A stretch of 64,000 nucleotides of DNA from assembly GCF_006345805.1 (NCBI RefSeq), contig NC_043023.1:18662001-18726000 (forward strand), given 5' to 3'. Within the stretch, counting starts at the first letter, position 1, and each line of letters begins with the position of its first letter. Made by a program: the position numbers and the translations under genes. Shown here piece by piece: positions 36,201 to 55,726 of this stretch. The stretch is from Octopus sinensis. Lineage: Eukaryota. A model generated the notes under the pieces. That model searched no databases. It saw nothing but the letters and a program-made list of their open reading frames with translations, and had not been told where the DNA came from.

Positions 36201-39200
36201 GAAAGTTGTGGTGAAAGAGTACAGCAGGGATCACCGCCATCCCCTGCCGGAGCCTCGTGGGGCTTTAGGTGTTTTCGCTCAATAAACACTCACAACGCCC
36301 GGTCTGGGAATCGAAACCGCGATCCTATGACCGCGAGTCCGCTGCCCTAACCACTGGGCCATTGCGCCTCCACTGGGGAAATATTAACATGTATTGATAT
36401 GAAGATGGACTCTACGAAGCATTATTATTAGTAGTACCAAAAAAATGAAAGCCAGCTGGAGACGATGATCTCCTGGGGCTACAAGCTACAGTAACACCCA
36501 CCTTTAGTGGTTAGCCATATTGAGATGGCTAGTATACCTTACGTTGTCGAGCGGTTACTGTTTACATCTCGTTCAGAGATTTATTATTGCTTGCAGACAG
36601 TTTTTCGAAATCAGTGACAGTAGTTACTGGGAAAAACATTAAATAGATATTTGCAAACAGGTCTCTCTTCATCGAAAACCGGTGATTACCGTACGTTGAC
36701 AAGAGGCAAATACCTCGAAACTGCAGTCCGTGCGTATAACTTTGGTTTACGAAAGAGGGATGACCTCCCTTTGCAAATACCATAAGGGCACAGAAAGTGT
36801 GCCTAAAGCCAGCTGGAGACGATGTTCTCCTGGGCCTACAAGCTACAGTAACACCCACCCTTAGTGGTTAGCCATATTGAGATGGCTAGTATACTTTACA
36901 TTATTTAGATTGATGTACCGAATGATATATCTTAATTCGTTTTTCTCCTCTGTAATTATGAGAATTTCTACAGATCTCTATAATACATAAACTCTATTTC
37001 CTCAGCTTTTAGCTCGTTCTTATCCAACTTTAAGACCAGTTAAGTAGGCAAAAAGCAAAAATTCCTTAGCACCAAAAGTTCCTTTAGGCCAAAACAACCC
37101 GTCTAAAGCAGTTTTGTCCAAAAACAGCAGCACCAAATCGCTACCAATAACTTCTTGGAACGAAAATCGTATATATGTCTATATATACATATACATATAC
37201 ATATATATATATATATATATATATATATATATATATATATATATATATATATATATGTATATATGTATATATTTATATGTATGTATATGTATATATATGT
37301 ATATGTATGTATGTATGTATATGTATATATATATATATATGTATATGTATATATATGTATATGTATATATATATATATATATATATATATATATATATGT
37401 ATATATATATATGTGTATGTGTGTGTGTAAAAAAATGCAAACTGGGACAAGAACGCAAAGCATTTAGAAGGCGATACAAAAAACACGGACGGGACATTCG
37501 AAGCCTTCGATCTTCAGTCAAGAACCGGATCATCCTCGCAATTTCGGCTGATTAATCTTGAGATTGCTCTGATCTCGCCAGCCCCAAAGGAAAATCTAAG
37601 CCAAGCGCACTAGATTTCTTGGAAGAAAGCCTCGAATGTATACAAAAACAAGGACGGAAAAACGGACGATGTTACACGAATATGAATACAAAAATACGTA
37701 AAAACAATAAGGATAATAATAATAACAATAACATATAGGCGTAGGAGTGGCTGTGTGGTAAGTAGCTTGTTTACCAACCACATGGTTCCAGGTTCAGTCC
37801 CACTGCGTGGCACCTTGGGCAAGTGTCTTCTACTATAACCTCGGGCCGACCAAAGCCTTGTGAGTGGATTTGGTAGACGGAAACTGAACGAAGCCTGTCG
37901 TATATATGTATATATGTGCGTGTGTGTGTTTGTGTGTCTGTGTTTGTCCCTCTAGCATTGCTTGACAACCGATGCTGGCGTGTTTATGTCCCCGTTACTT
38001 AGCGGTTCGGCAAAAGAGACCGATAGAATAAGTACTGGGCTTACAAAGAAAAAAGAATAAGTCTCGGGGTCGAGTTGCTCGATTAAAGGCGGTGCTCCAG
38101 CATGCCGCAGTCAAATGACTGAAACAAGTAAAAGAGTAAAGAGAGAGTATGTATGTGTGTGTATCTGTTTGTGTGTCTGTGTTTGCGCCCCCCCCCCGGC
38201 ATCTCTTTCCTTAAAGGGACTTTATTGTTTAAGACGTCAGCTGCAAGAGGGCAAGAATTAAACGTTTGCAGTTTCCACCAGAAATCATCTCACATTATTG
38301 CTGTTATTAAAACCTTTTGGAGCAAAACATGATTTTCATATCTTCTATACACATGATGAAGTTATATTATCCCTGTTTCTTGTCAAGTACCAGTTTCTCT
38401 ATATAATTGTTCACTTTATAATTGCAGTGACCTCGGAAACAATAAGGACATGATGTGTGAATGTCACCTGCCGGCCATCCTAAATTATACGAAGACAATA
38501 TTGAAAAAAAATGTATACATCTTGGGCGACTGTCGGACAGATTTAGGCGAATTAATACGTATAATGAAATATATGCAATGTCAAAGTTAGTAAAATCTGC
38601 TTTGTTTGTTTTCTTCTTATTTTATTACTAGCAGTGTCGCCCGGCGTTGCTCGGGTTTGTAAGGGAAATAACTCGTGAACGCCTTCCGGCATCGGTGGCG
38701 GCTACGTCCACGCGTACGGGGGTCGCACCGCGAGCTTAGCTTCGTTCTTTCGGTTTCGGGCACGTCAGGGCGGCGGAGCAACGGGCGACCGTGCTTGCCG
38801 CAGTTTGCCATCTTTCGTGTTGCTCGAAATGCTATATAACCATTTTTAGAGAGTTACTTCCCTTATAGATGCCAATTCGGGCTTTCTTAGCCATTTCTGT
38901 TTTGGTGTCTTCAAGCCATGAAGTCGTTGTTCTAAAAGAACGCTGGTCTCCTTGACAACGCTTTACGACGTTGATTTCCTTACACTCCCTTCCCCACAGC
39001 TTCACGAGGGAGGGAAGAAGGGGGAGAAGCAAACACAGGTGCAGGTGTGACCATGGACGCCAACTCCGCCGCCATCGACACACGAAAAATTATGCATTAA
39101 AATGGAATAAAAAATGATGTTAAATTATTTTTAAAATCGTAGACTCATCGTAGACGCGCGCTAATACCCAGACGGGCTCGATATGAATCACGACTATAAG

Positions 39201-55726: not shown

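Follow-up and report, generated by a model that had tools for sequence, protein, structure and literature searches.

Adhesion G protein-coupled receptors (GPCRs) take their definition from the ligands of their ectodomains, and in octopuses they include an octopus-specific, co-localised expansion, denoted group 3, whose members carry GPCR proteolysis site (GPS) and seven-transmembrane (7TM) regions (Ritschard et al. 2019, PMC6408891). In that InterProScan-based survey, leucine-rich repeats (LRRs) were found in 5 of the 22 group members and a Death domain in one, and expression was reported in suckers, skin and the axial nerve cord. We found no report of a Ly6/uPAR (LU) three-finger domain in an adhesion GPCR in the literature searchable, and neither the 2019 reclassification nor the 2026 IUPHAR review lists Ly6/LU as an adhesion GPCR module. 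Here we analyze a gene in a 64,000-nucleotide stretch of the Octopus sinensis genome (RefSeq assembly GCF_006345805.1, contig NC_043023.1, positions 18,662,001 to 18,726,000 of the forward strand; hereafter the window, numbered from its first letter), for which an original prediction from the sequence alone had proposed an unusual adhesion GPCR with an LRR solenoid and an LU domain joined directly to the GAIN domain. The results reported below indicate that this locus is probably a degenerating member of a mollusc adhesion GPCR family that can no longer signal as a GPCR and encodes at most a 7TM-less LRR-LU(-GAIN) ectodomain protein.

Within the window, the gene is located on the + strand and consists of LRR exons, an exon for the C-terminal LRR cap (LRRCT), two LU exons, five GAIN/GPS exons and an exon for the first transmembrane helix (TM1), all with phase-consistent AG/GT boundaries except where noted (Table 1); the span initially assigned to it, 38428-55726, begins and ends at exact exon edges. 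The entire window is colinear with a locus (L001) on chromosome OX597842.1 of O. vulgaris, at approximately 96-98.5 % identity (about 97 % overall), which contains the orthologue P0001; the O. bimaculoides orthologue is P0002 at locus L003 (CM046629.1:4087096-4114254). Because the window begins at the equivalent of L001:21951, a point 12 kb within the O. vulgaris gene, the signal peptide and the N-terminal LRR cap (LRRNT) are encoded upstream of the window, and the LRRNT was observed only in P0001. The window contains no N and has the composition of eukaryotic DNA, with abundant microsatellites and short interspersed elements (SINEs) and one long interspersed element (LINE). Features common to the window and the O. 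vulgaris assembly are not accidents of assembly. LU and GAIN are joined in single gene models in both O. vulgaris (P0001) and O. bimaculoides (P0002), which speaks against the possibility that the two belong to different transcripts.

The LRR exons encode 24-residue LxxLxLxxNxI repeats closed by the LRRCT, as is typical of extracellular LRR domains (Pfam LRR_8, E=1.6e-25 on P0001). They are kept with respect to O. vulgaris, and in 10 of the 11 a yag acceptor is paired with a donor reading gtaagt or gtgagt, the last donor being gtatgt. Any subset of these 72-nt, phase 2-2 exons could be skipped in frame, and the P0001 model takes only the last 2 of the 11 window LRR exons along with 2 located upstream of the window; the length of the solenoid may vary by alternative splicing, or the P0001 model may be under-predicted.

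The cysteine-rich region encoded directly after the LRRCT shows a 12-cysteine pattern (with a CETC..C..C start) that spans both LU exons and, as judged by profile comparison and structure prediction, is an LU three-finger domain, with the 12-cysteine LYPD1 type as its nearest known relative. Pfam analysis of the window or P0001 copy alone produced no match even at E<=10. A profile built from 21 diverse copies of the domain and compared with the PDB resulted in a hit to human LYPD1/Lynx2 (6ZSS, E=2.1e-7) with 12 of the 12 cysteines in register, and all 29 PDB matches were three-finger proteins, including LYPD6, SLURP-1, CD59 and the ACVR1/TGFBR1 ectodomains. When the copies were searched individually, 10 of the 21 matched the Pfam family Toxin_TOLIP and others matched CD59, UPAR_LY6 or Activin_recp. 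The framework of 12 conserved cysteine columns, found across 17 to 26 copies, corresponds one-to-one to the cysteines of LYPD1. An AlphaFold (AF2) model of the P0001 copy, which is 95 % identical to the copy in the window, was generated from an alignment of 26 diverse copies that included gastropod, scallop, echinoderm, hemichordate and tunicate sequences, and reached pLDDT 82 and pTM 0.71; a model based on a shallow alignment of 16 near-identical Octopus copies (pLDDT 48) was discarded. The best Foldseek match of this predicted, not experimental, structure was again 6ZSS (TM 0.70, rmsd 3.0 Å over 85 columns, E=0.011), and the top 50 matches were all three-finger folds. Thus, the cysteine-rich domain, tentatively described as LU-like in the original prediction, does not belong to another fold. 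Identity with the TGF-beta/activin receptor ectodomains, which possess the same superfold, was considered and rejected because these score below LYPD1 in both sequence and structure comparisons.

The LU module is present in 23 of the first Octopus matches, in up to three tandem copies per protein, and nearly all copies keep the cysteine columns; P0005 carries three and P0022 two such copies in tandem after the LRRCT. A profile search of 1.84 billion representative proteins produced only 31 matches, with distant copies in Argonauta, the gastropod Nucella, a scallop, a sea cucumber, an acorn worm and a tunicate. The LYPD1-like LU subtype therefore seems, by this distribution, to be old and widespread and to have been recruited into the mollusc receptor. 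In Holothuria leucospilota (P0137), Ptychodera flava (P0141) and Clavelina lepadiformis (P0139), the 12-cysteine LYPD1-like LU domain is found in multi-copy, mucin-linked or glycosylphosphatidylinositol (GPI)-like proteins.

The architecture of the family to which the gene belongs became apparent from its relatives. The first homology search identified about 50 of these in Octopus, mostly named 'ADGRG6-like' or 'slit-like'. In a census of modules, LU and GAIN were found to be separated by a SEA-like module of about 100 residues in every LU-bearing relative with a 7TM region, and a hormone-receptor motif (HRM) was also detected in all but 3 of the LU-bearing 7TM models. The order LU-SEA-HRM-GAIN-7TM is seen in the O. 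bimaculoides proteins P0127, P0129 and P0133 (accessions XP_052827273, XP_014788728 and XP_014773211) and in an intron-less transcript contig from SRR21372857 (P0130), whereas the partial model P0134 of Argonauta hians (GAB1603074) shows the same order as far as GAIN/GPS. Furthermore, a 1322-aa protein of the gastropod Nucella lapillus (P0140; KAL8620952), in which the HRM was undetected, is a member of the family, which is thus not restricted to cephalopods. The HRM matches are modest, being sub-threshold in Pfam (E ~0.008-0.0097), with an obvious Cys/Trp pattern, and those of the SEA-like module, obtained by profile comparison with the SEA domains of ADGRF1 and 1IVZ, are weak (E 0.04-0.3, with 0.04 for ADGRF1). 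The ground plan predicted from these relatives is LRRNT-LRR-LRRCT-LU(1-3)-SEA-like-HRM-GAIN-7TM. One of the members with this order, P0129, additionally has a cytoplasmic C-terminal Death domain (Pfam E=3.3e-6), a tail that is unusual among adhesion GPCRs, confirming the Death domain noted in group 3.

In comparisons with the PDB, the best matches of P0127 were ADGRG2 (2e-68) and ADGRG6 (2e-65), followed by ADGRG3 and ADGRG4; the ADGRG6 ectodomain (6V55) aligns over the HormR and GAIN domains of an intact member, and the non-mollusc matches to the GAIN domain of the window are all ADGRG2. By this ranking of similarity, as opposed to a phylogeny, the GAIN and 7TM regions of the family are ADGRG2/G6-like, not ADGRA-like. 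The choice of the vertebrate receptors ADGRA2/3, with their LRR-Ig-HRM-GAIN order, as comparators in the original prediction was accordingly not upheld: intact members match ADGRG2 and ADGRG6 best, and no immunoglobulin (Ig) domain was found in any relative. An HRM-GAIN-7TM gene, P0003, was considered as the downstream half of the window gene and rejected because it is located 550 kb away.

Unlike its intact relatives, the gene in the window joins LU directly to GAIN. The absence of an Ig or HRM exon from the intervening intron (46595-49097), claimed at the outset, holds: this interval contains no N, Pfam analysis of its ten open reading frames (ORFs) produced no match, and tblastn with the middle modules of 4 paralogues (residues 210-407 or 241-441, a region of about 200 residues) failed to detect a counterpart in the window. 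The SEA and HormR domains that characterize ADGRG6-type ectodomains just N-terminal to GAIN are therefore missing here. The intron is equally short in O. vulgaris and O. bimaculoides, and P0001 and P0002/L003 share the same junction, ...CCTGNLC(N/S)KNDLI followed in GAIN by ...SQKSVY(F/L)KAEDIDLAV. Because both orthologues show this junction, the SEA-like and HRM exons appear to have been lost before the split of O. bimaculoides and O. vulgaris (dS ~0.25). Given that intact relatives carry both modules between LU and GAIN, the direct junction is best read as a secondary, derived deletion and not as the family architecture. In the census, such a junction was found only in models without a 7TM region. 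Thus, the proposed direct joining of LRR-LU to GAIN is real at this locus, but as a receptor architecture it fails, since the family carries SEA-like and HRM modules and the locus lacks the 7TM region.

The GAIN domain itself is recognizable. Its exons align to those of the approximately 50 relatives and end in a GPS with an intact motif, including the HL↓T codons at 54199-54204 and 54205 (the arrow marks the cleavage site); Pfam detects the GPS of P0001 with E=1.7e-14 and its GAIN domain with E=0.0018, below the cutoff. The first helix of GAIN subdomain A is shorter than in the paralogues. The original prediction that both the cleavage site and the tethered agonist (Stachel) are intact thus holds for the former only: the window reads TSFALL/DVYQ (the slash marks an exon boundary), whereas TSFALLM(D/N)VYQ is found in every intact paralogue and in the O. 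bimaculoides orthologue. In paralogues the GPS exon closes with a Met codon (CTA ATG/gt), which is gone in the window and in O. vulgaris; the sequences of these two read TSFALL-D or TSFALL-T, in either case without the Met of the T-x-F-x-x-L-M signature. The O. vulgaris gene additionally has a private 12-bp deletion in its Stachel linker.

The lesions in the signalling half of the gene are numerous. TM1 has lost 1 bp at about 55702-55704, so that ...SLACLILI is followed by an in-frame TAA (55705-55707); the last 19 nt of the exon, read in the shifted frame, encode IFYVCSK, as in the paralogues, and the exon donor, AA/gtaaga, is identical in all copies compared. A nonsense substitution was rejected as the source of this TAA because the alignment shows the 1-bp deletion. 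Alignments with the O. bimaculoides orthologue and with a paralogue locus (L002) demonstrate that the deletion and the stop codon are common to the window and O. vulgaris and absent from the other two. Within GAIN exon 2, the ancestral donor ATG/GTACAG has become ATG TTACAG in the window (50116-50117 = TT) and in O. vulgaris, whereas O. bimaculoides keeps the GT; the sole in-frame option is a GC donor, AAG/GCAATG, at 50109/50110, which the P0001 model uses. GAIN exon 1 has acquired a 1-bp deletion private to the window at about 49130 (AAA compared with AAAA in O. vulgaris). As a result, the GAIN start implied earlier at 49098 breaks the frame, with a stop after 21 codons, and only the acceptor at 49109 keeps the frame open.

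Downstream of TM1, the next exon is found after 1.65 kb in a paralogue and after 2.5 kb in O. bimaculoides. In contrast, a tblastn search with 8 7TM-bearing relatives (E<=10) against the 8.3 kb that follow TM1 in the window resulted only in noise, with no TM2-7 exon. The window remains homologous to the O. bimaculoides intron as far as 61328, immediately before a SINE that begins at 61329 and just before the position of TM2, and the homology ends at the same point in O. vulgaris. Between TM1 and the expected TM2, both species contain a non-LTR LINE (56311-59277 in the window, - strand), whose 688-aa ORF contains AP-endonuclease domains (Pfam matches to Exo_endo_phos at 1.6e-11 and to Endonuclease-reverse transcriptase at 1.9e-6) and is followed by an ORF of 297 aa. 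Of the class B2 7tm_2 domain, the window retains only the frameshifted TM1, and P0001 has no 7tm_2 match. Because the signalling half is disabled in these ways, the locus would be unable to signal as a GPCR, and the status of adhesion GPCR that was initially assigned to it is lost.

The region comprising GAIN exon 2 and its flanks (48923-50167) is 92.3 % identical to O. vulgaris, compared with 96-98.5 % elsewhere in the window, and the exon itself shows 8 nonsynonymous and 1 synonymous differences; the GPS exon of the window is closer to the O. vulgaris paralogue P0026 than to the orthologue P0001. This pattern could reflect either a relaxation of constraint in O. vulgaris or gene conversion between paralogues.

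Several observations weigh against the interpretation of the locus as a degenerating receptor gene. The O. vulgaris annotation calls P0001, which ends at the TM1 TAA, protein-coding, and an ORF from the LRRs to this stop codon can be assembled in both species, although only by using the weak acceptor at 49109 and the GC donor at 50109. In the comparison of the window with O. vulgaris, dN/dS is 1.11 for GAIN-GPS-TM1 (16N:4S) and 0.33 for LRR-LRRCT-LU (8N:6S); this contrast is in favour of a degenerating gene and suggestive, yet it is not significant (Fisher p=0.25), and in the comparison with O. bimaculoides the value is about 0.4 for both halves. The deletion specific to the window falls within a short run of A and may stem from an error of assembly. 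The TM2-7 exons could lie beyond the end of the window, yet the TM1 frameshift would still truncate the protein.

The leading alternative, although we find it doubtful, is that the gene has been neofunctionalised and is maintained by selection as a 7TM-less LRR-LU-GAIN protein, secreted or anchored by the TM1 stub, that acts as an adhesion molecule or as a ligand decoy for receptor paralogues. Consistent with such a product, the frame can be maintained in both species, the use of the GC donor in P0001 suggests transcript support, the LRR splice sites are perfect, and the dN/dS of the LRR-LRRCT-LU part is low. There are also many LRR-LU-only models in Octopus (P0005, P0046-49, P0126 and P0131), but many of these are fragments of split annotations, as L003 illustrates. 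Selection on the complete ectodomain is further at odds with the dN/dS of about 1.1 for GAIN-GPS-TM1, with the private coding indels of 1 bp in the window and 12 bp in O. vulgaris, and with the reliance on an acceptor that is weak and lies 11 nt downstream of a strong one.

The O. bimaculoides locus, in comparison, retains TSFALLM, a TM1 without interruption (...SLACLIFTVIFYLCSK) and, 2.5 kb beyond it, a TM2 exon. It has been annotated as two genes, P0002 and a GPS/7tm_2 fragment of 182 aa, because of assembly gaps in introns (runs of N at 14415-15516 and 18889-19985 of L003), the second of which probably hides GAIN exon 3; a homology search aimed at the 182-aa downstream model did not recover it. 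One could imagine on this basis that LU was built in cis into an adhesion GPCR ectodomain found from gastropods to octopods, that O. bimaculoides possesses a working minimal LRR-LU-GAIN-7TM receptor in which LU, directly adjoining GAIN, gates the exposure of the tethered agonist, and that the copy in the window survives as an LRR-LU decoy for the same ligand; this combined scenario we consider unlikely.

We regard as highly improbable the view that the window itself specifies a working adhesion GPCR belonging to a new LRR-LU-GAIN-7TM class whose autoproteolysis and tethered agonist are intact. The intact GPS motif and HL↓T site and the conservation of the LU-GAIN junction in three species are compatible with it, and a receptor of such shape may exist in O. 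bimaculoides, which keeps the agonist, TM1 and the TM2 exon; in the window, however, TM1 is frameshifted to a TAA that is shared with O. vulgaris, the Stachel Met and TM2-7 exons are missing, the donor and frame of GAIN are damaged, and no direct LU-GAIN gene model of any species in the census has a 7TM region. Extensive mRNA editing occurs in cephalopods. That the lesions are sequencing or assembly artefacts, as the location of the window-specific deletion in an A run might suggest, or are repaired at the RNA level, for example by A-to-I editing, in an intact receptor gene can be practically dismissed, given that two independent assemblies, although different at about 2-3 % of sites, agree exactly in the TM1 deletion, the Met loss and the TT donor and that editing can neither restore a deleted base nor supply TM2-7 exons.

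We thus return to the locus as a probable degenerating receptor gene. From the exon anatomy, the LU fold, the family architecture, the lesions and the phylogenetic spread, we infer the following order of events, along with the loss of function and the possible residual role of the LRR-LU part. The family comprises ADGRG2/G6-like mollusc adhesion GPCRs that expanded in octopods, and most of one member is contained in the window. The ligand-binding head of intact members is presumably formed by their LRR and LU parts, and GAIN is predicted from its sequence to cleave at HL↓T, exposing the TSFALLM tethered agonist. Deletion of the SEA-like and HRM exons before the divergence of O. bimaculoides and O. 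vulgaris would have placed LU beside GAIN. In the lineage of the vulgaris group, the signalling half would then have been disabled by the 1-bp deletion and TAA in TM1, the loss of Met7 of the agonist, the loss of the GT donor and the absence of the TM2 and subsequent exons, with a further 1-bp deletion at the beginning of GAIN in the lineage of the window. The residual product would be at most an ectodomain protein ending in a 20-residue hydrophobic stub.

Table 1. Positions of the exons and other features of the gene in the window (slash, exon boundary; arrow, cleavage site)
Feature	Position	Strand	Evidence and remarks
LRR exon array, 11 single-LRR exons	142..35434	+	Pattern and splice-site scan; each 72 nt, phase 2-2
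LRR exons 1-6	142-213, 5946-6017, 7641-7712, 11069-11140, 12691-12762, 16568-16639	+	
LRR exons 7-11	20059-20130, 27389-27460, 30811-30882, 34971-35042, 35363-35434	+	
LRRCT cap exon	38428..38585	+	52 residues, 98 % identity to P0001
LU exon 1 (finger 1, Cys 1-4)	43394..43485	+	Phase-1 acceptor tctgtag/AT; tblastn with P0001, P0012, P0017
LU exon 2 (fingers 2-3, Cys 5-12, C-terminal CC....C[NS])	46411..46594	+	tblastn, PDB profile, AF2 and Foldseek
LU-to-GAIN intron, 2.5 kb	46595..49097	+	SINE and microsatellite repeats only
GAIN subdomain A exon 1	49098..49328 (alternative start 49109)	+	Ancestral acceptor 49097/49098; alternative gctgag/GG at 49108/49109
GAIN exon 2	49944..50115 (50109 with GC donor)	+	Ancestral donor lost
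GAIN exon 3	52374..52487	+	38 residues; tblastn
GAIN subdomain B exon 4	52829..52957	+	43 residues; tblastn
GPS exon	54076..54222	+	C.FW..W..GC..C.CDHL↓TSFALL; cleavage site between 54204 and 54205; ends ...TTG/gttagt
Linker and TM1 exon	55612..55726	+	31 residues before TAA 55705-55707, 19 nt remaining
Expected TM2-7 start region	55727..64000	+	No TM2-7 exon detected
SINE-like copies	1577-2001, 2853-3267, 28095-28516, 30892-31322, 37719-38154	both across the set	
SINE-like copies	39432-39827, 44325-44718, 46873-47253, 61329-61500, 61800-62201	both across the set	

The remaining features of the window are mostly repeats. Many copies of the SINE-like element of about 400 bp, recognizable by a recurrent peptide, occur in the O. 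vulgaris locus as well. A microsatellite (42427-43290, about 0.9 kb), composed of A/T-rich trinucleotides that would encode poly-Ile or poly-Leu depending on the frame, ends approximately 100 nt 5' of LU exon 1, and a purine-rich low-complexity tract (49342-49858; poly-Glu/Lys/Arg) takes up a large part of the intron that separates GAIN exons 1 and 2. In the GAIN introns, two open frames on the + strand, 51920-52138 and 53801-53926, look by eye like PIF1/Helitron remnants; a Pfam scan of the helicase-like frame 51920-52138 produced no match.

With regard to the broader implications, the family and its expansion are already known, whereas LU as a standard module of adhesion GPCR ectodomains and its occurrence in a gastropod appear to be undescribed in the literature searchable. 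As an annotation, LU within adhesion GPCRs is modestly new and adds a module so far unlisted for these receptors. The LRR-LU-SEA-like-HRM-GAIN-7TM plan re-annotates the octopus group 3 expansion and is older than cephalopods, and the LRR-LU heads are concrete constructs for ligand screens. The locus also calls for caution, as its direct LU-GAIN layout comes from a copy with a dead receptor half and should not be read as a new receptor class without O. bimaculoides cDNA.

Comparison with the described systems places the gene as follows. It belongs to the same gene family as group 3 (Ritschard et al. 2019, PMC6408891), for which no LU, SEA or HRM module was reported and which was called octopus-specific, whereas a full-length relative exists in Nucella. 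Among Ly6/uPAR LU proteins such as LYPD1 (Lynx2), LYPD6, SLURP-1 and CD59, it is LYPD1 whose 12-cysteine pattern the LU domain shows, down to the additional disulfide pair of loop 3, the CxxC at the N terminus and the CCxxxxC(N/S) at the C terminus. However, LU proteins known so far comprise small modulators that are secreted or GPI-anchored, along with LU-only tandems of the uPAR/C4.4A type, whereas the LU domain of the window, which falls under every Pfam LU threshold, is an internal module that follows an LRRCT cap in a large type-I receptor ectodomain. ADGRA2/3 (GPR124/125) similarly possess an N-terminal LRR block and LRRCT upstream of (HRM-)GAIN, but no Ig domain was found in the window or in any relative, an LU domain being present instead, the GAIN and 7TM regions of the family have ADGRG affinity, and no ADGRA entry is found among the best 60 PDB matches; the LRR blocks of the two groups are likely to be independent acquisitions. 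The closest parallel is with ADGRG6 (GPR126) and ADGRG2 (GPR64) of adhesion GPCR subfamily VIII. Although the octopus family has an LRRNT-LRR-LRRCT-LU head in place of CUB-PTX, and although the window locus, without SEA-like, HormR and 7TM, is not a receptor, the intact members resemble ADGRG6 and ADGRG2 in the sequences of GAIN/GPS and 7TM, parallel ADGRG6 in the order SEA-like-HormR-GAIN-7TM, and have in common with both the HL↓T site and the TxFxxLM tethered agonist.

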